From: Macrostomum lignano
Taxonomy: Eukaryota
Reading direction: 5' to 3'
Assembly: GCA_002269645.1 (NCBI GenBank)
Contig: NIVC01000037.1
Span: 868,001-932,000, forward strand
Length of the DNA stretch: 64,000 nt
Shown here: in pieces, positions 4,795 to 64,000 of the stretch
How positions within the stretch are numbered: position 1 is the stretch's first letter
Layout: each line of letters begins with the position of its first letter
The notes under the pieces: model-generated
What the model saw: only the letters and a program-made list of their open reading frames with translations
What the model was told of the DNA's origin: nothing
The model's database searches: none
Position numbers and translations under genes: made by a program

Positions 4795-6097
4795 TGGTTC
4801 CAGTCCAGATGGTTCCAGTCCAGACAGTTCCAGTCCAGAGGGTTTCCAGTCCAGACAGTTCCAGTCCAGATGGTTCCAGTCCAGATGGTTCCAGTCCAGA
4901 CAGTTCCAGTCCAGAGGGTTTCCAGTCCAGACAGTTCCAGTCCAGATGGTTCCAGTCCAGACAGTTCCAGTCCAGAGGGTTTCCAGTCCAGACAGTTCCA
5001 GTCCAGATGGTTCCAGTCCAGATGGTTCCAGTCCAGATGGTTCCAGTCCAGATGGTTCCAGTCCAGACAGTTCCAGTCCAGAGGGTTTCCAGTCCAGACA
5101 GTTCCAGTCCAGATGGTTCCAGTCCAGATGGTTCCAGTCCAGATGGTTCCAGTCCAGATGGTTCCAGTCCAGATGGTTCCAGTCCAGATGGTTCCAGTCC
5201 AGATGGTTCCAGTCCAGATGGTTCCAGTCCAGATGGTTCCAGTCCAGATGGTTCCAGTCCAGATGGTTCCAGCCCAGATGGTTCCAGTCCAGATGGTTCC
5301 AGTCCAGATGGTTCCAGTCCAGATGGTTCCAGTCCAGATGGTTCCAGTCCAGATGGTTCCAGTCCAGATGGTTCCAGTCCAGATGGTTCCAGTCCAGATG
5401 GTTCCAGTCCAGATGGTTCCAGTCCAGATGGTTCCAGTCCAGATGGTTCCAGTCCAGATGGTTCCAGTCCAGATGGTTCCAGTCCAGATGGTTCCAGTCC
5501 AGATGGTTCCAGTCCAGATGGTTCCAGTCCAGATGGTTCCAGTCCAGATGGTTCCAGTCCAGATGGTTCCAGTCCAGATGGTTCCAGTCCAGATGGTTCC
5601 AGTCCAGATGGTTCCAGCCCAGATGGTTCCAGTCCAGATGGTTCCAGTCCAGATGGTTCCAGTCCAGATGGTTCCAGTCCAGATGGTTCCAGTCCAGATG
5701 GTTCCAGTCCAGATGGTTCCAGTCCAGATGGTTCCAGTCCAGATGGTTCCAGTCCAGATGGTTCCAGTCCAGATGGTTCCAGTCCAGATGGTTCCAGTCC
5801 AGATGGTTCCAGTCCAGATGGTTCCAGTCCAGATGGTTCCAGTCCAGATGGTTCCAGTCCAGATGGTTCCAGCCCAGATGGTTCCAGTCCAGATGGTTCC
5901 AGTCCAGATGGTTCCAGTCCAGATGGTTCCAGTCCAGATGGTTCCAGTCCAGATGGTTCCAGTCCAGATGGTTCCAGTCCAGATGGTTCCAGTCCAGATG
6001 GTTCCAGTCCAGATGGTTCCAGTCCAGATGGTTCCAGTCCAGATGGTTCCAGTCCAGATGGTTCCAGCCCAGATGGTTCCAGTCCAGATGGTTCCAG
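4795..6097. repeat. Minisatellite, 15-bp unit gttccagtccagatg
   Basis: Near-homogeneous array that is open in several frames (MVPVQ, DGSSP, WFQSR, DWNHL). Confidence 0.97.
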
Positions 6098-6582
6098 TTC
6101 AGTTTGTTCGACAAGGGTCCATAAACTGATCCTGCCGCAGCCATGGTTCCAGTCCAGATGGCAGCAGAGGGGTCCATGGAATGATTGCCAGACCGGTTCG
6201 CCTGTCAGTCAGTTGGTCAGTCGGGCTTAGGAATGAGGATTAGCTGTGGGGCTGTTTATTCCGATACCGATTTGCTTGGCATGCACTCGCACTGGATCGG
6301 GTCGGCCACCGCCTCCCCCCTTCCATCTTCGAGCCGCGTGTGGGCGGATCTCCACCCCCAAGGCCTGAACCTCCCCGTTCGCGTATACGTGTAAGGGGCA
6401 TTGGGAACAACTCGGCTTCTGCCAGTCTTCCTAAAGTTCCCAAGGTTCCCCAATCCTTGTGCCAACGGCTGTCTGTGGGAAATTTATCCCAATAGTGATT
6501 TATAGAATCCCAACCCGTAGCTTATCCCAGCCAATTCAATTTTTCAATTGAATTTTTGTGCTTTTCTTATCAAATTTTACCA

Positions 6583-17893: not shown

Positions 17894-18175
17894 GGGGTTG
17901 TAGCCTAGTGGTTAGAGCGTCGGTCTAGCGATTTGAAGGTCGGGGGTTCGATTCCCGATCCCACTGGAAAAAATAGTGTCCTTGAGCAAGACACTTCACT
18001 CTGTATTGCTTCAGTTCACCCAGCTGTAAAATGGGTGCCAGCATTAGCTGGGGTAATTGAGGGTGTGTGTGGCGACCCTCCAGTCCTTGGACTGAACAGC
18101 CGTACGCAGCCTTCAGATGCGCCGCGCAATAGCTGCGGCTGAGCTGTCGGTTGCACATCTGGCCCAAATAGGGCA
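17894..18175 (+). mobile_element. tRNA-derived CORE-SINE (MIR-like core)
   Basis: tRNA-like head with Pol III A box tagcctagtggttagag and B box ggttcgattccc. It is followed by gtgtccttgagcaagacacttcactc...cttcagttcacccagctgtaaaatggg, which resembles the CORE domain gtgaccttgggcaagtcacttaacctc...cctcagtttcctcatctgtaaaatggg. The 3-prime boundary is approximate. Confidence 0.85.
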
Positions 18176-26519: not shown

Positions 26520-26798
26520 TCAAGAGCAAATGCCGCCCTGCGGATGGACTACAAGCGAGGGATCCTTCAGGTCCACGCCTTGGTGGTGCATGTCCTCCTG
26601 CTTGAAGCTGCCCAGCTGCTCCATGTGGCCCATCAGCATGGCTCCATGATGGTGCAGGCCGTGATGATGCTGCTGGTGAAGCTGATGGTGAGCCATGGCT
26701 GGACTGACTGACTCGGCTGACACGTTGTCCTCGGATGACCTTGTCCTGGTCTGCAGCTTCTTCTTCTTCATTCGACGGTTTTGAAACCACACTTTCAC
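26520..26798 (-). CDS. Post2: Posterior Hox Post2, last exon (homeodomain helix 3 and His-rich C-terminus)
   Basis: Acceptor ctcgcccgcAG|GTG; VKVWFQNRRMKKKKLQ...HHQLHQQHHHGLHHH...GICS*. Confidence 0.93.
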   Translation of the reverse strand: MKVWFQNRRMKKKKLQTRTRSSEDNVSAESVSPAMAHHQLHQQHHHGLHHHGAMLMGHMEQLGSFKQEDMHHQGVDLKDPSLVVHPQGGICS

Positions 26799-27349
26799 CT
26801 GCGGGCGAGTGAGCGGGACAATCTCCATCATAGTGAGTCTGACGGACTTTTAGGACATTCCAAATGATAAAAAAGTGTTCTTTTTAATAAAAGGTTCGCA
26901 ATCAAAACAGGATAGATCTACTGGGGTATTGTGAGACAGACTTTTAAGGATTCTACTCTCATCGCCACTACAAGTAGTTGACCAACCCTTACGAAAGGGT
27001 AGCGATAGGGTCAGATTGGTTCGAGTAGACTCCCACAGTCACAATCACTTGTTACGGCTGGGGTTAGGGTTAGGGTTGCACACCCAAAGCACCCATATTA
27101 TTCCCCGCGGTGAGTCCGAGGTTTATTGTCAGTTCTATCTATAGCAATGCACCACAGAATCGCGAAAGAAGTTCCTGATTAATCTGAAAATATGATGATC
27201 CACTCGCTTTCCATAAATAATGAACTGTGTTTTTTAGACTACGTTCTCCGGTCTGTCATAGACTAATTTTTTTCGAATAAGTTGTATAATATAATTAGTA
27301 GTCTACTTCCTAGGGTGACTATCAATAGTATGAAACGAGCATGGCTTAC

Positions 27350-27486
27350 CTGACGCTCAGTCAGATGCAGTTGGCAAGAAATTTCCCATCGTTTTTGCCG
27401 GGTGATGTAGGCGTTCATGAGGAACTCGCGCTCCAGCATGGCCGTCTGGTAGCGAGTGTACGGCTTGCGCTTCTTGCGGCTGCGCA
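27350..27486 (-). CDS. Post2: Posterior Hox Post2, homeobox exon (homeodomain residues 1-44)
   Basis: Acceptor cccccgcAG; [45 protein letters not shown]; donor CAG|GTAAGC at the classical homeodomain 44/45 position. KPYTRYQT and [12 protein letters not shown] are spiralian Post2 signatures (Post1 has YSKYQ and KPKRWELS). Confidence 0.95.
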
Positions 27487-27509
27487 CTGCGGGGGCGGCG
27501 GTGGGGGAG

Positions 27510-28260
27510 AATCAGGTGAGGCCGGGTGGGGAATCACGTGAGAAGGGGTGGGGAATCAGGTGAGAGCGGGTGGGGAATCACGTGAGAAGGGGTGGGGAAT
27601 CAGGTGAGAGCGGGTGGGGAATCACATGAGAAGGGGTGGGAATCAGGTGAGGGCAGGTGGGGAATCACGTGAGAAGGGGTGGGGAATCAGGTGAGAGCGG
27701 GTGGGGAATCATGTGAGAAGGGGTGGGAATCAGGTGAGAGCGGGTGGGGAATCAGGTGAGGGCGGGTGGGGAATCAGGCGAGAGCGGGTGGGGAATCAGG
27801 TGAGGGCGGGTGGGGAATCAGGTGAGGGCGGGTGGGGAATCACGTGAGAAGGGGTGGGGAATCAGGCGAGAGCGGGTGGGGAATCAGGTGAAGGCAGGTG
27901 GGGAATCAGGTAAAGGCGGGTGGGGAATCAGGTGAGGGCGGGTGGGGAATTGTGTGAATTGCAGGAGGATAATCAAGGGGAATTGCGGGAGGGGAATCAG
28001 GGGAATTGCGGGAGGATAATTAGGGGAATTGCGAGAGGATAATCAGGGTATTGCGGGAGGATAATCAGCAGGGGAAGTGCGGGAGGTGAATCAGGGGAAT
28101 TGCGGGACGTAAATCAGGTGAATTGCAGGAGGGGAATCAGGGGAATTGCGGGAGGTGAATCAAGCTAATTGCGGGAGGTGAATCAGGTGAATTGCGGGAG
28201 GTGAATCAGGGGAATTGCGAGGGGGATCACGTGAATTGCGGGAGAGGAATTGGGTGAATT
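27510..28260. repeat. Two adjacent G-rich minisatellites in the Post2 intron (ggggaatcaggtgagggcgggt; ggggaattgcgggaggtgaatca)
   Basis: Units of ~20-23 bp. Confidence 0.88.
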
Positions 28261-28667
28261 CTTCTTAATAAAAAACAGACGGACGAGTTGGCCTCTTTCC
28301 TCTAGGATAGGGTCTACAAACAGAAATTTTTGCAAAAAAGATTGCGCTAAAAGCCACACTTCCCCTTAGACAGTTTAGGATCAATTAGTAAAATGCGCAG
28401 ATTAACCATAAATTTTCTTTGATAATCATCAGACTCCGCGCAGACGCCAGTAGCAACTGTCAAAAGGCCAGCACGCTATTTCTTGTCTCTTGGCTTTTAA
28501 AAGGTGAGGCGCTCTCAGCAACAGGGCAGATGATCGGTCAAATTTGGGTAGCTGCCTGGAAGCTGCTAATGGATTTTTCGGTTTTTAAGTGCCGCTAAGA
28601 GAGCACAGGTGACCCCCATTGACCCCCCCCCCTCCGTGGACCCCGAAGCCCCGTGGGATGCACGTAC

Positions 28668-28842
28668 CGCCGGCTGCGGAGTCTGGATCAGCGAACTCGT
28701 CCAGCCGGGCAGCATCATCTCGTGCGGAGCAAACAGGTACGAGCCACCGCCGACGCCACCGCCAGCGCCGCCGACTCCGACGACACCTCCGCGAAGCTGC
28801 TGCTGCTGCTGCTGCTGCTGTTGTTGTTGCTGTTGTTGCTGA

Positions 28843-28874
<32 letters not shown>

Positions 28875-29447
28875 ATGATGATGACTGTGAACTGCTGCAG
28901 CGGCCGCGGCCCCATAGAAGTCGGTGGGCGAGTGCAGGCCGGGGCGGCCGTGCCCGAAGCTGTGCGGGAAGCCGCCGCCAGTGGCAGCGGCCATGTGGCT
29001 GAGGAGGCCCTGCGACTGGGCCGCCTGCATGAAGTCCGGCGGGCCCGGGTACGCGCACGGGATCGGCGTGCCGCACTTGCCGACGCCGCCTGAACCCGGA
29101 TGACCCGGCATGCCGCCGCCTCCGCCGCATCCGCCGTTCACCGCCTGGGCGCTGCCGTAGTGAACTCGCGGATCGTACGGCCACATGTTGGCCGCGGCCT
29201 GCAAAGCTCCGTACCCGCCGCCGCCGCCGACGCTCCCGCCGCTGCTGTTGCCGTCGCTGTTGCGGCCGTCTTGAGGAAGCGAGCCGACGCAGCCTCCACC
29301 GCCGCCGCCACCGCCGCCGCCGCCAGAGCCCGACATTGCAGCAGCTGCGGCTGCTGCTGAAACTGCGGGCCCAGCGATTGCGGCGTAGGACGGTAGGCGG
29401 GAGCCGGGCGGGAACAGCCCGCTGCCGCTGGTTTCCATGGATACCAT
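28668..29447 (-). CDS. Post2: Post2 first coding exon (low-complexity Gly/Ala/Gln/His-rich N-terminus)
   Basis: MVSMETSGSGLFPP...MWPYDPRVHYGS...poly-A, poly-G, poly-H/Q...EMMLPGWTSS, with a Trp near the end as in posterior Hox proteins. The best donor is GCG|GTACGT at 28667, but its phase does not match the next exon (see findings). Confidence 0.72.
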
Positions 29448-34791: not shown

Positions 34792-34968
34792 AGTCAGTCA
34801 GTCAGTCAGTCAGTCAGTCAGTCAGTCAGTCAGTCAGTCAGTCAGTCAGTCAGTCAGTCAGTCAGTCAGTCAGTCAGTCAGTCAGTCAGTCAGTCAGTCA
34901 GTCAGTCAGTCAGTCAGTCAGTCAGTCAGTCAGTCAGTCAGTCAGTCAGTCAGTCAGTCAGTCAGTCA

Positions 34969-35007
<39 letters not shown>

Positions 35008-35020
35008 GGTCTGTCTGTCT
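34108..35020. repeat. (CAGT)n/(CTGT)n microsatellite
   Basis: Mostly pure run with a few interruptions. Confidence 0.97.
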
Positions 35021-36149
35021 GTCTGTCCTCTCTAACTTCTGTTTGTTAATCTTTTCCCTCTTCTCGCAAAGAAGTAGCACCTAAAACAGCAAGCACAATT
35101 AATCAAAGCAATCGCTCACCTGTTCACTCAGAGATGGTGTCAGTCAGTAAGCTTCAGTAAGGACAGACTGCTTGCAGTTTGTTGCAAGAAACTTTGCTCG
35201 GGAAATCTGCGACAAAAGATGGTAGTGTAGTCACTTGAATTAGCAGATGCTCCGTAACGCTGCCCCCTCATGCTGCAGTCATTCCTACAACTGGGACAGG
35301 CAGAGCCTGGCTAATTAAACTCTAAATTTATCTGTTATACACAAGCTGCTGCTGCTGCTGATGTGTGGATGTTTTTACACAGAAAACAATACCTTAGTTG
35401 AGCATAAGCAAGCAGTTGGGAAGCGGGCATCAAGATATCCAATAAAGCGCTAGAAACAGTCTGCTTGGGAAAGTGGGAAGGGCAGAGGCACAGAGGAGCG
35501 GGGGGAGAATGAGGTGGGGCTTAGCCAATTGGAGAGTTAAAAAACTTCGGGGTTAGGGTTGTGCAAGGCTAGACAATGAATGAGCAAGCAGCAGCATGCG
35601 TACACGCCCGTCCTTTGATCTTTGCCGCCACATTCTGGCATGCAGAGGGCCAGAAGGGTGTGATTGCGCCCCGTCCGTGCACCCATATTGGAGCGGGCAA
35701 AGTGTAAAACATTGCACTGCCCAACTGGTTAAACCTACGAGCTAACAACCCTCCAAAAAGCCTACTAGAATTACTAGTACTACTCGCTATTATACTACTG
35801 TAGGGATAGGCCTGCAGCAGCTGGGGGTGCTGGCCACCCACACCCATAGGCAAACCCAGTTTACTGCAGTCGAGGCTCACCCACCATGTAACTTGTAATA
35901 AAACAACTAAACATGACCCACAGAGTGAATTCATTGCTATTTTTTTCGATATTTTAGATTTTCTATGAACACTCAGACTGCATTAATTTGGCACGGGAAA
36001 CCATCTTGATGTTTGGTCTCACACCTGCCAGTGCCCAGTCCCCTGAATTCGCACATCATTTGCTCCTGAGAGCTCAGGTTTACAACTTAGAATTATCCAA
36101 ATAATGAGTATAGTTTTCTACAGTCGGGAATGAAATTTGCGCTAATGTT

Positions 36150-44061: not shown

Positions 44062-44445
44062 TGTGGTGCTGGCGCCCCTGGTGCTGGCGCCCCTGGTGCT
44101 GGCGCCCCTGGTGCTGGCGCCCCTGGTGCTGGCGCCCCTGGTGCTGGCGCCCCTGGTGCTGGCGCCCCTGGTGCTGGCGCCCCTGGTGCTGGCGCCCCTG
44201 GTGCTGGCGCCCCTGGTGCTGGCGCCCCTGGTGCTGGCGCCCCTGGTGCTGGCGCCCCTGGTGCTGGCGCCCCTGGTGCTGGCGCCCCTGGTGCTGGCGC
44301 CCCTGGTGCTGGCGCCCCTGGTGCTGGCGCCCCTGGTGCTGGCGCCCCTGGTGCTGGCGCCCCTGGTGCTGGCGCCCCTGGTGCTGGCGCCCCTGGTGCT
44401 GGCGCCCCTGGTGCTGGCGCCCCTGGTGCTGGCGCCCCTGGTGCT
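44062..44445. repeat. Minisatellite, 15-bp unit ggcgcccctggtgct
   Basis: Perfect copies. Confidence 0.97.
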
Positions 44446-45099
44446 GAAGACTGTCAGCTCAGATGAAATGTTATTTCCCATAGAATTACGAGTAAATACT
44501 TTCTATTTTTAATCTTTCTCTTACGAGTAAACCATCCATCCATCCACTTGGAAACAAACAATAATTCTTCACTTTATGCCAGTTCTCGGATGTTGCCTGC
44601 GCTTCGTGGCATGCACAAAAAACTGGGGCACTGCAGAAATATAAAAATATGAAAACGCCGCATCCACCTACATTTGAAAGAAGCGGCGGCGGCGGCAGCT
44701 GACACAGTCGAGGCCGGCATTTGGTTGGAGTGGGGAGAGGAAGTTTTATAGCTGGGCTGCTTGAAGCATTTGCTGGCACATGATGGCAGCTGATTCTGCA
44801 GGAGACATCAATAAAATATCAGGGATTAGCATGCATGTGGGGCGGCGGTGTCCGCAGCAAGTTTTATTGTATAGTTTCGAATGCTTTGCCCCCCTCATTT
44901 AGCATATTTTGCAGCTCCATGCAGAATTGAATTTCTGTTTCATATTTAGTTAGACGCATGCTTTATGACGGCATCCATCCATGTTGACTTGGCGTGCCGT
45001 CGCGCGCATGGCAACCCGCTACTCTTTGGACTCGAGCCGAAGCTTGAAATGCAGTTCCGGTGATTTATAATCGCTATGGATTTGCTCTGGAACACAGGG

Positions 45100-45894: not shown

Positions 45895-46402
<508 letters not shown>

Positions 46403-48434: not shown

Positions 48435-48800
48435 GGTACAGGATGGTAAAAATGGTACAGGATGAATTATAGGTTAGTACAGGATGGTAAAAATGGTACA
48501 GGATGAATTATAGGTTAGTACAGGAGGGTAAAAACGGTACAGGATGAAATATAGATTAGTACAGGATGAAATATATATCAGTACAGAATGAAATATAGAT
48601 TAGTACAGGATGAAATATAGGTTAGTACAGGATGGTAAAAATGGTACAGGATGAATTACAGGTTAGTACAGGATGGTAAAAACGGTACAGGATGAAATAT
48701 AGATTAGTACAGGATGGTAAAAATGGTACAGGATGAAATATAGGTTAGTACAGGATGGTAAAAACGGTACAGGATGAAATATATATTAGTACAGGGTGAA
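48435..48800. repeat. Minisatellite built on a gtacaggatg core
   Basis: Alternating ggtacaggatgaaatatagattagtacaggatggtaaaa units. Confidence 0.88.
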
Positions 48801-49094: not shown

Positions 49095-49640
49095 TTTGTA
49101 CAGGATTGTAGAGACATTAGTACAGGATTGTAGAGACATTAGTACAGGATTGTAGAGACATTAGTACAGGATTGTAGAGACATTAGTACAGGATTGTAGA
49201 GACATTAGTACAGGATTGTAGAGACATTAGTACAGGATTGTAGAGACATTAGTACAGGATTGTAGAGACATTAGTACAGGATTGTAGAGACATTAGTACA
49301 GGATTGTAGAGACATTAGTACAGGATTGTAGAGCCATTAGTCAGGATTGTAGAGCCATTAGTACAGGATTTTAGAGACATTGGTACAGGATTTTAGAGAC
49401 ATTGGTACAGGATTTTAGAGACATTGGTACAGGATTTTAGAGACATTGGTACAGGATTTTAGAGACATTGGTACAGGATTTTAGAGACCTTGGTACAGGA
49501 TTTTAGAGACATTGGTACAGGATTTTAGAGTCATTGGTAGAGGATTTTAGAGACATTGGTACACGATTTTAGAGACATTGGTACAGGATTTTAGAGACAT
49601 TGGTACACAATTGTTGACATTGATACAGGGTTTTAGAGAC
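49095..49640. repeat. Minisatellite, 22-bp unit agtacaggattgtagagacatt
   Basis: Tandem copies with a polarised variant (ggtacaggattttag) at the right end. Confidence 0.93.
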
Positions 49641-49699
49641 ATTGGTACGGCATTGCAGAGGCATTGGGGAAATATATTGCTGTTGCTGGCCATGGCAGG

Positions 49700-49795
49700 C
49701 AGGTATTCCTGTAGATACGAGCTTCTGCTTTTGAGGTGTGAAAACTGATACAGCCATTTCGAAGTCAGCAAAAGCTTGCATGTACAGGACACCCG
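49700..49795 (-). ncRNA. mir-993: pre-miRNA miR-993 (Mir-10 family)
   Basis: The 3p arm (49725->49703) GAAGCUCGUAUCUACAGGAAUAC is 19/23 identical to insect miR-993-3p GAAGCUCGUCUCUACAGGUAUCU as I recall it, with an identical seed. The 5p arm (49791->49769) UGUCCUGUACAUGCAAGCUUUUG resembles miR-993-5p UACCCUGUAGUUCCGGGCUUUUG. The arms pair with two mismatches and one bulge, giving 2-nt 3-prime overhang geometry. There are 43 nt between the arms. Confidence 0.9.
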
Positions 49796-49929
49796 GACTC
49801 TCTGCTGTTTTCGTTCACCTGACTTTAGTTGCTTGACTTTGAGTTGCTTTCCAGTTCGAATCGCTTTTGCACCGGCCCTCTTTTAGTCTGTCTGTTTCTC
49901 TCTCTTCTGGGCAAGTTGCTTTTATGCCA

Positions 49930-49937
49930 CTTTTATA
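49930..49937 (-). promoter_or_regulatory. Candidate TATA box (TATAAAAG) for pri-miR-993
   Basis: On the minus strand ~140 nt upstream of the 5p arm, flanked by CATAAA motifs at 49921 and 49960. Confidence 0.4.
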
Positions 49938-61863: not shown

Positions 61864-62131
61864 ATGACTGGGGTGCAGCGCAACTCGCAGCAGCACAGAG
61901 CAGGGATGCATCAGCAGCATCAGCAGATGCTGCATGGCGGTCTACCACATCCAATCTATCCCTGGATGATGGAGACTCGAGGCCACAGCGCTGGCGGAGC
62001 AGGAGGCGGCGGCGGTGGCGGTGGCCATAGCCGATCCGCTTCAAGGACAGCTCAGTCGGGACGTCAGTCTGCAGTGGACGGCGTCGGCTTTGACATGGAA
62101 TCGGCGACCGAGTTTAGCAAAGGAGATGCTG
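61864..62131 (+). CDS. Hox gene hexapeptide exon, probably Hox3-like; homeobox lies beyond the window
   Basis: MTGVQRNSQQHRAGMHQQHQQMLHGGLPHPIYPWMMETRGHSAGGAGGGG...; YPWM at 61957-61968; strong donor G|GTAAGT at 62132 (phase 1). The (Y/F)PWMxE(S/T)R context and a linker of more than 50 aa are typical of paralogy group 3. The ATG follows an in-frame stop at 61807. Confidence 0.75.
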
Positions 62132-62159
62132 GTAAGTGAAGACTTTGAAGCTGCGGAGA

Positions 62160-63797
62160 GATGGGCGAGAGAGAGAGAAATGCAGGGAGATAACAGAGAA
62201 GGGAGATAAGGGAGATAAGAGAGAAATGTAGGGAGATAACAGAAACGCAGGGAGGTAAGAGAGAAATTGCAGGGAGATATGCGAGAGCGAGAGAGAAATG
62301 CAGGGAGATGTGCGAAAGAGAGAGAGGAATGCAGGGAGATGCGCGAGAGAGAGAGAGGAATGCAGGGAGATGCGCGCGAGAGAGAGGAATGCAGGGAGAT
62401 GCGCGAGAGAGAGAGAGGAATGTAGGGAGATGTGCGAGAGAGAGAAATGCAGGGAGATGTGCAAGAGAGAGAAATGCAGGGAGATGTGCGAGAGAGAGAA
62501 ATGCGGGGAGATGTAGGGAGATAAGAGAGAAACGCAGGGAGATAAGAGAGAAACGCAGGGAGATAAGAGAGAAGCGCAGGGAGATAAGAGAGAAACGCAG
62601 GGAGATAAGAGAGAAACGCAGGGAGATAAGAGAGAAGCGCAGGGAGATAAGAGAGAAACGCAGGGAGATAAGAGAGAAGCGCAGGGAGATAAGAGAGAAA
62701 CGCAGGGAGATAAGAGAGAAGCGCAGGGAGATAAGAGAGCAACTCAGGGAGATAAGAGAGCAACGCAGGGAGATAAGAGAGAAACGCAGGGAGATAAGAG
62801 AGAAACGCAGGGAGATAAGAGAGAAACGCAGGGAGATAAGAGAGAAACGCAGGGAGATAAGAGAGAAACGCAGGGAGATAAGAGAGAAACACAGGGAGAT
62901 AAGAGAGCAACGCAGGGAGATAAGAGAGAAACGCAGGGAGATAAGAGAGAAACGCATGGAGATAAGAGAGAAACGCAGGGAGATAAGAGAGAAGCGCAGG
63001 GAGATAAGAGAGAAGCGCAGGGAGATAAGAGAGAAGCGCAGGGAGATAAGAGAGAAGCGCAGGGAGATAAGAAAGAAACGCAGGGAGATAAGAGAGCAAC
63101 GCAGGGAGATAAGAGAGCAACGCAGGGAGATAAGAGAGCAACGCAGGAGATAAGAGAGAAGCGCAGGGAGATAAGAGAGCAACGCAGGGAGATAAGAGAG
63201 CAACGCAGGGAGATAAGAGAGAAACGCAGGGAGATAAGAGAGCAACGCAGGGAGATAAGAGAGCAACGCAGGGAGATAAGAGAGCAACGCAGGGAGATAA
63301 GAGAGAAACGCAGGGAGATAAGAAAGAAACGCAGGGAGATAAGAGAGCAACGCAGGGAGATAAGAGAGCAACGCAGGGAGATAAGAGAGAAACGCAGGGA
63401 GATAAGAGAGAAACGCAGGGAGATAAGAGAGAAACGCAGGGAGATAAGAGAGAAACGCAGGGAGATAAGAGAGCAACGCAGGGAGATAAGAGAGAAACGC
63501 AGGGAGATAAGAGAGCAACGCAGGGAGATAAGAGAGCAACGCAGGGAGATAAGAGAGCAACGCAGGGAGATAAGAGAGCAACGCAGGGAGATAAGAGAGC
63601 AACGCAGGGAGATAAGAGAGAAGCGCAGGGAGATAAGAGAGCAACGCAGGGAGATAAGAGAGAAACGCAGGGAGATAAGAGAGAAACGCAGGGAGATAAG
63701 AGAGCAACGCAGGGAGATAAGAGAGCAACGCAGGGAGATAAGAGAGAAACGCAGGGAGATAAGAGAGAAACGCAGGGAGATAAGAGAGCAACGCAGG
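62160..63797. repeat. Purine-rich minisatellite, 21-bp unit gcagggagataagagagaaac, in the Hox intron
   Basis: Tandem copies (REIREKR / LSYLPAL ORFs). Confidence 0.95.
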
Positions 63798-64000
63798 AAG
63801 AAAGAATTCGGAGTCAGAGAAAGAAACGCGGGCAGATACGGAGAGAGATAAACGCAGTGAAAGGGCATGAACTGACTGTGTGTGAACAGAGACAGCAAGC
63901 CCCTTTGCTATAATATTTTAACTCCACGCGCGTATCAAAGTCGCAAATGGATGCTCTTCAGGCTGAGAATCGAGCCCAGTCAGTCCCGATGCCTGCGCAG

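Follow-up and report, generated by a model that had tools for sequence, protein, structure and literature searches.

The minus strand of positions 49805 to 49690 very probably carries, in the genome of a spiralian, a bona fide, sequence-divergent and predicted functional orthologue of mir-993 (MirGeneDB Mir-10-P4), a microRNA gene of the protostome Hox cluster. The locus lies in the 64,000-nt stretch of DNA that was analyzed as a whole (the window), and a hairpin of this family had been proposed at this place in a preliminary description. Four independent lines of evidence speak for the miR-993 call: an independent covariance model, an arm-by-arm comparison with the paralogues, base pairing in the register of the family, and an asymmetric distribution of substitutions. 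The analysis establishes the sequence of the locus, its hairpin, its family homology and paralogue assignment, its strand preference and its signature of constraint. For Mir-10-P4, whose loss has been reported in several molluscs, the locus contributes an orthologue from a spiralian. The coordinates of the hairpin, of its parts and of the neighboring features are collected in Table 1.

Table 1. Features of the hairpin locus and its surroundings; positions count from the first letter of the window.
Feature	Position	Strand	Description
Predicted mature miR-993-3p (Mir-10-P4 3p)	49703..49725	-	GAAGCUCGUAUCUACAGGAAUAC, seed AAGCUCG; exact match
Predicted 5p (star) arm	49769..49790	-	GUCCUGUACAUGCAAGCUUUUG; MFE pairing to the 3p arm, 2-nt 3' overhangs
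Long apical region with small internal stem	49726..49768	-	Spacing of the predicted arms about 43 nt, of which about 37 are unpaired (fold)
Whole pri-miRNA hairpin (predicted)	49690..49805	-	Fold and covariance-model match
Candidate TATA box TATAAAAG	49930..49937	-	About 140 nt upstream of the hairpin base; weak evidence
Two minisatellite arrays	48436-48774, 49098-49588	-	Immediately downstream of the hairpin on the hairpin's strand
Hox-gene hexapeptide exon	61865..62134	+	MTGVQRNS...PIYPWMMETRGHS...KGDAG, followed by gt; ATG 61865, GT donor near 62134
Post2-type posterior Hox gene	26523..29447	-	Three exons, complete-looking; exon 1 from 29447 to about 28600, Gly/Gln-rich

Read on the minus strand, the hairpin locus comprises GCAGAGAGUCCGGGUGUCCUGUACAUGCAAGCUUUUGCUG...AAAAGCAGAAGCUCGUAUCUACAGGAAUACCUGCCUGCC. 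The mature 3p arm that had been noticed in the preliminary description is present as an exact 23-mer, GAAGCTCGTATCTACAGGAATAC, of which the window holds one copy (49725..49703, minus strand), and the pairing 5p arm was found where predicted (49790..49769). The corresponding 116-nt RNA folds into a single hairpin with a minimum free energy (MFE) of -42.1 kcal/mol (z -3.46), a stability that none of 200 dinucleotide shuffles equaled. The hairpin is the minimum-energy structure that had been anticipated, and it is retained in both the MFE and the centroid structure of a 191-nt context. Given the 3p start of the family at G49725 and 2-nt overhangs, the predicted precursor is 88 nt long (49790..49703). 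Below the inferred Drosha cut, the lower stem comprises approximately 10 bp broken by a 4-nt bulge, shrinking to approximately 5 bp in the 191-nt MFE structure, and the 3' flank contains CNNC motifs from +15, +18 and +21. That the hairpin is not seen in the open reading frame track is trivially true, and Rfam misses it as well. The minus-strand TATAAAAG reported upstream of the hairpin is indeed present (49937..49930); as a post-hoc promoter pointer it is weak, since the window has three copies of the 8-mer (both strands counted) and 30 of TATAAA.

For the family assignment, we used a pattern of 19 fixed bases derived from the arthropod mature miR-993-3p sequence (GAAGCTCGTNTCTACAGGNAT), which has one match in the window at 0 mismatches, while shuffles with 3 mismatches permitted give 0.02 matches. 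The expectation for such a 19-base match to a mature miRNA, calculated from the pattern, is approximately 5e-7 in 128 kb. We realigned 15 published arthropod mir-993 precursors (alignment in supplement 5 of PMC4862073) and derived from them, with the candidate left out, a covariance model (R1). Scanning the 64 kb with R1 yielded a sole significant locus, 49788..49705 (minus strand; 26.9 bits, E 2.9e-5), and neither R1 nor Rfam scans of the window returned a second hairpin of the Mir-10 family.

The 3p arm of the hairpin contains the mature family sequence GAAGCUCGUnUCUACAGG with the seed AAGCUCG. It is identical to miR-993-3p at 21 of 23 positions in scorpion and at 20 of 23 in Tribolium and Metaseiulus, and to the Mir-10-P4 3p arm of Eisenia at 17 of 22, whereas the other Mir-10 paralogues share only 13-16 positions with it in their 3p arms. 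The comparison set consisted of Eisenia Mir-10-P1, P4, P5, P6 and P7 (supplement of PMC6160089) together with arthropod mir-10 and mir-993. Among all Mir-10 paralogues compared, the 3p arm is therefore nearest to P4, and the P4 seed is intact. Public metagenome contigs were scanned with the 3p 20-mer CAGAAGCTCGTNTCTACAGG, which was found at 27 loci; as 25 of these are full mir-993 hairpins, this 3p sequence is nearly diagnostic of mir-993. Together with the pairing and substitution patterns described below, these results support the identity proposed in the preliminary description.

The locus is a divergent member of the family. Environmental mir-993 loci score 61-96 bits with R1, against 26.9 bits here. 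In Rfam scans, run at the gathering scores over the window and by E-value over both the locus and the window, no miRNA match was returned at the hairpin, and RF00104 (mir-10) was absent even at E<=10. Rfam has no separate mir-993 family. Canonical mir-993 loci exceed the RF00104 gathering score of 47.5 bits (51.8 and 60.5 bits for environmental loci L003 and L005, respectively), and divergent natural variants reach 29-33.5 bits, below the gathering score. A genuine family member can thus lie under the Rfam mir-10 threshold, and Rfam-based annotation would miss this locus. The sole miRNA match in the window is to mir-341 (34928-35022, plus strand); with 28.9 bits, where the gathering score is 90, it was rejected as chance-level. 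Four environmental hairpins (L001 2357-2456, L002 88-181, L010 576-661 and L022 4937-5026) combine an invariant 3p arm with a variant 5p arm (UGUAC, GCGAGC, CCGAGC), resembling that of the window, and score under the Rfam mir-10 gathering score. These variant 5p arms indicate that the 5p arm of mir-993 evolves freely in several lineages.

Divergence of this extent raises the question of whether the locus is a decaying mir-993 relic that is no longer processed, comparable to the loss of Mir-10-P4 in several molluscs (Crassostrea, Lottia and Melibe are scored as lacking the paralogue). The low R1 score and the missing Rfam match would agree with decay, as would the setting of the hairpin, with minisatellite arrays to either side and tandem repeats making up 42% of the region. 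The 5p arm is identical to the Mir-10-type sequence UACCCUGUAGAnCCGGGCUUUUG at 16 of 22 positions and retains the CCUGUA and GCUUUUG blocks, and has lost its seed (ACCCUGU changed to GUCCUGU); the lower-stem sequence that is conserved in arthropods is absent at this locus. Decay, however, should strike both arms and abolish the pairing between them. Over the 22 columns of the duplex, the changes relative to the arthropod consensus amount to six on the 5p side and two on the 3p side, so that the 3p arm has kept both its high identity to miR-993-3p and its seed. The duplex nevertheless pairs in 20 of 22 columns in the family register, compared with 16-20 in 17 published arthropod and earthworm precursors and with a minimum of 16 paired positions asked of a family duplex. 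Six random substitutions in the 5p arm would retain at least 20 pairs with p = 0.002, under a heuristic that takes the arthropod consensus to approximate the ancestor. The pairing is specific to this register, with 82% of cells paired and at most 47% when the arms are slid. Formal covariation on the mir-993 set did not reach significance, the family being too conserved. A conserved 3p arm facing a changed yet pairing 5p arm indicates that selection probably acts on the 3p product and on the stem. This pattern argues against a decaying relic, which we consider very unlikely.

We also considered whether the functional gene resides on the plus strand, running in the direction of the YPWM gene, or whether the locus is transcribed bidirectionally as in iab-4/iab-8, with the 5p arm GUAUUCCUGUAGAUACGAGCUUC as a Mir-10-P1-like product. 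The plus strand forms a hairpin as well (-37.9 kcal/mol, z -2.5) and is matched by R1 at 16.8 bits, and its 5p arm is identical to Eisenia Mir-10-P1f at 17 of 22 positions and to mir-10 at 16 of 22. Such resemblance is in keeping with the quasi-palindromic nature of Mir-10-family hairpins: the antisense strands of true mir-993 loci (L003-L027) score 28-46 bits with the sense-strand R1, which is above the score of the locus studied here. These antisense scores mirror the near-palindromic hairpins of the family, and since antisense strands score this high, strand calls based on model scores alone are unsafe. Other observations speak against the plus strand. Its 5p arm has UUCCUGU and is without the invariant Mir-10 seed ACCCUGU, and conservation peaks at the 3' end of the would-be 5p product, the reverse of what is expected for a 5p product. 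Four G:U pairs of the minus strand become A:C mismatches on the plus strand, the plus-strand fold is 4 kcal/mol weaker, and the R1 score is 10 bits lower than on the minus strand. Because the plus strand lacks the seed, gains A:C mismatches and scores lower, we assign the gene to the minus strand and regard a plus-strand or bidirectional gene as highly unlikely.

Finally, a chance hairpin made of local repeats that merely resembles miR-993 is effectively refuted: the arrays directly downstream hold 36 copies of TCCTGTAC on the 5p-arm strand and a 22-mer resembling a repeat unit is found inside the loop, but the similarity between repeat units and hairpin is not significant (p ~0.09), and both the low expectation for the 19-base match and the predominance of mir-993 hairpins among the environmental loci with the 3p 20-mer stand against it. 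The same lack of significant similarity led us to reject the idea that the hairpin derived from, or was the source of, the flanking minisatellites.

The motif TCCTGTAC corresponds to the core of the 5p arm; the two arrays together hold 36 copies, and only one other copy is present in the window. Plus-strand RNA from the arrays would consequently match the seed of the predicted 5p strand 36 times (TACAGGA), and it is conceivable, albeit speculative, that array transcripts of this strand might interact with miR-993-5p. Tandem repeats are a general feature of this DNA, with 47 merged arrays of mostly 15-60 nt units accounting for 42% of the 64 kb. Among them are a perfect 15-mer repeated 25.5 times (44064-44446) and approximately 126 copies of ATCT (45900-46402). 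Most of the long open reading frames are read-through of arrays, for which Pfam matches are absent or spurious and of low complexity. A tRNA-like sequence at 17894-17963 (plus strand) scores 33.5 bits with Rfam, barely over the gathering score, and receives no call from ARAGORN; a tRNA pseudogene or a repeat derived from a tRNA would be a possible explanation.

The genomic context of the hairpin was analyzed on both sides. Approximately 12.1 kb separate the hairpin from the ATG of an exon that encodes a YPWM hexapeptide, the two lying on opposite strands and head to head, so that the distance of about 12 kb and the antisense orientation given in the preliminary description hold. The exon reads ...LPHPIYPWMMETRGHS..., in which E-T-R follows YPWM-M. 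Flanks of the hexapeptide differ between paralogue groups, with ..PWMKESR in PG3, ..PWMKEKK in PG2 and ..PWMKK/RK in PG4/5. The window sequence YPWMMETR has E-[ST]-R after the hexapeptide, which on the basis of these flanks we take to be a Hox3 signature. The gene is probably Hox3. The microRNA had been put forward as independent support for this call; it is consistent with it, as is the YPWMMETR flank, and neither is proof or can certify Hox3 alone. A protein search with the YPWM exon found no homologue at E<=1, and only fragments of homeobox exons, none with a hexapeptide, were retrieved when a generic Hox3 homeodomain plus hexapeptide served as the query. The homeobox of the YPWM gene lies past position 64000. 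The intron after the YPWM exon opens with an AG-rich minisatellite of approximately 1.6 kb, with units of 21-58 nt (62172-63805, plus strand), that runs nearly to the end of the window; the homeobox exon therefore follows that of the hexapeptide at a distance of 1.9 kb or more.

The only homeobox within the 64-kb window is that of the Post2-type gene. It is encoded in two pieces (27511 to approximately 27370, then approximately 26806 to 26523), with an intron after residue 44 of the homeodomain; the part following the split is VKVWFQNRRMKKKK, and the VKVWFQNRRMK motif is present. The homeodomain occupies a single open reading frame in the nine top database relatives that were read, compared with the intron-split form found here. 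The best named relatives are lophotrochozoan Post2 proteins (Platynereis, Maculaura, Phoronopsis, Acanthochitona and Antalis, covering an annelid, a nemertean, a phoronid and molluscs; 56-80% identity), which places the source among the spiralians. As the best matches reach at most 80% identity, in the homeodomain only, this spiralian is a fast-evolving one. On the contig of the closest Post2 relative (L028), no mir-993 was found within 10 kb on either side.

The published position of mir-993 is between Hox3 and Dfd, which bears out the earlier statement that miR-993 is found between Hox3 and Hox4, and its Hox position is conserved among protostomes (PMC3394115). Transcription opposite to the Hox genes in arthropods, which had also been proposed, receives indirect support. 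In Strigamia, BLAST coordinates of mir-993 ascend while those of mir-10, which we take to lie on the Hox strand, descend on one scaffold, and in Ixodes the reverse is seen. A further observation comes from the environmental contig L007 (1-10908), probably of an acariform mite, in which a minus-strand pb-type homeobox has mir-993 (plus strand, 6063-6148) approximately 5 kb upstream of it, in divergent orientation. This order resembles that in Tetranychus, where mir-993 adjoins pb, and it fits mites without Hox3.

The head-to-head pair of the YPWM gene (plus strand) and mir-993 (minus strand) matches what would be the ancestral arrangement of Hox3 and mir-993. On the other side of the hairpin, Post2 is found at approximately 20 kb in tandem orientation, where the ancestral neighbor is Dfd, convergent. 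The ancestral arrangement is thus retained by half only, on the anterior but not on the posterior side: the ancestral position claimed in the preliminary description agrees with the Hox3-like exon, and it does not agree with the far neighbor, which is Post2 rather than Hox4/Dfd. The observed order and strands do not call for breakup of the cluster, which had been assumed, since they would be explained exactly by one inversion of the Dfd..Post2 block. If so, minus-strand Lox2, followed by Lox4, would be expected to the left of the window, and Dfd at the far breakpoint beside Post1. The order Hox3-like (plus), mir-993 (minus), Post2 (minus) in this way provides a simple and testable inversion model of cluster rearrangement. 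The hairpin is moreover an independent marker of position for the anterior portion of a Hox region that has been rearranged. One might further speculate that mir-993 and Hox3 were kept as a head-to-head pair through a shared bidirectional regulatory region in this rearranged, fast-evolving spiralian. We deem this unlikely on balance; if true, it would be the first sign that the linkage of the miRNA with Hox3, and not the whole cluster, is the constrained unit.

The locus is a divergent new member of a well-known family and leaves the knowledge of miRNA action unchanged; the proposed mechanism is canonical biogenesis and repression through the 3p seed. A minus-strand primary transcript, possibly starting near position 49905, would fold into the 49805..49690 hairpin. 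Drosha/Pasha would crop the 88-nt precursor at the predicted sites, and Dicer would cut off the long apical loop. The 3p strand GAAGCUCGUAUCUACAGGAAUAC would then enter Argonaute, with the 5p strand as the putative passenger, and the loaded strand would be predicted to repress mRNAs with CGAGCUU seed matches. The 3p seed is matched 2-3 times per strand in the window, which is what chance would give (approximately 4 expected). The 3p arm is the mature Mir-10-P4 product in annelids and most arthropods (PMC12257675), although among insects arm usage has switched (PMC2956262).

Compared with known systems, the hairpin is closest to mir-993/Mir-10-P4, with which it shares the 3p sequence and the seed AAGCUCG, the CAGAAGCUCG...CUACAGG core, the hairpin register and the 3p-type conservation (PMC4862073, PMC12257675), as well as the location on the opposite strand beside a probable anterior Hox gene. 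A long loop is also found in the Drosophila and Anopheles genes, and that of the window is unusually long. The 5p arm differs in having GUGUCCUGUAC where the family has UACCCUGUAG. The 3p arm ends in AAUAC and, like that of Metaseiulus, has an A at position 10; the posterior neighbor is Post2 instead of Dfd. With mir-10 (Mir-10-P1; RF00104), the locus has the superfamily, the hairpin architecture and the CCUGUA/UACAGG stem base in common, but the mir-10 5p seed occurs on neither strand of the window hairpin, and the 3p arm is identical to mir-10 3p at only 13-14 of 23 positions. The gene mir-10 sits between Dfd and Scr, on the Hox strand. Like iab-4/iab-8, the locus is a Hox-cluster hairpin that can be folded on both strands; the two have no sequence similarity, and iab-4/iab-8 serves as a model for the bidirectional alternative only. 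The gene mir-993 is present in annelids and in nematode Hox clusters, and the annelid Mir-10-P4 genes (Eisenia efe-mir-993a/b; Capitella and Platynereis) represent the same paralogue in spiralians, with the 3p arm as the mature product. The Eisenia mature sequence begins one nucleotide earlier than the 3p arm predicted for the window, whose seed register is therefore tentative. Its 3p arms are AGAAGCUCUGCUCUACAGGUAU or ..CCGUUCUACGGGUCU, so that the 3p arm of the window, at 17 of 22 identical positions, is nearer to the arthropod form.
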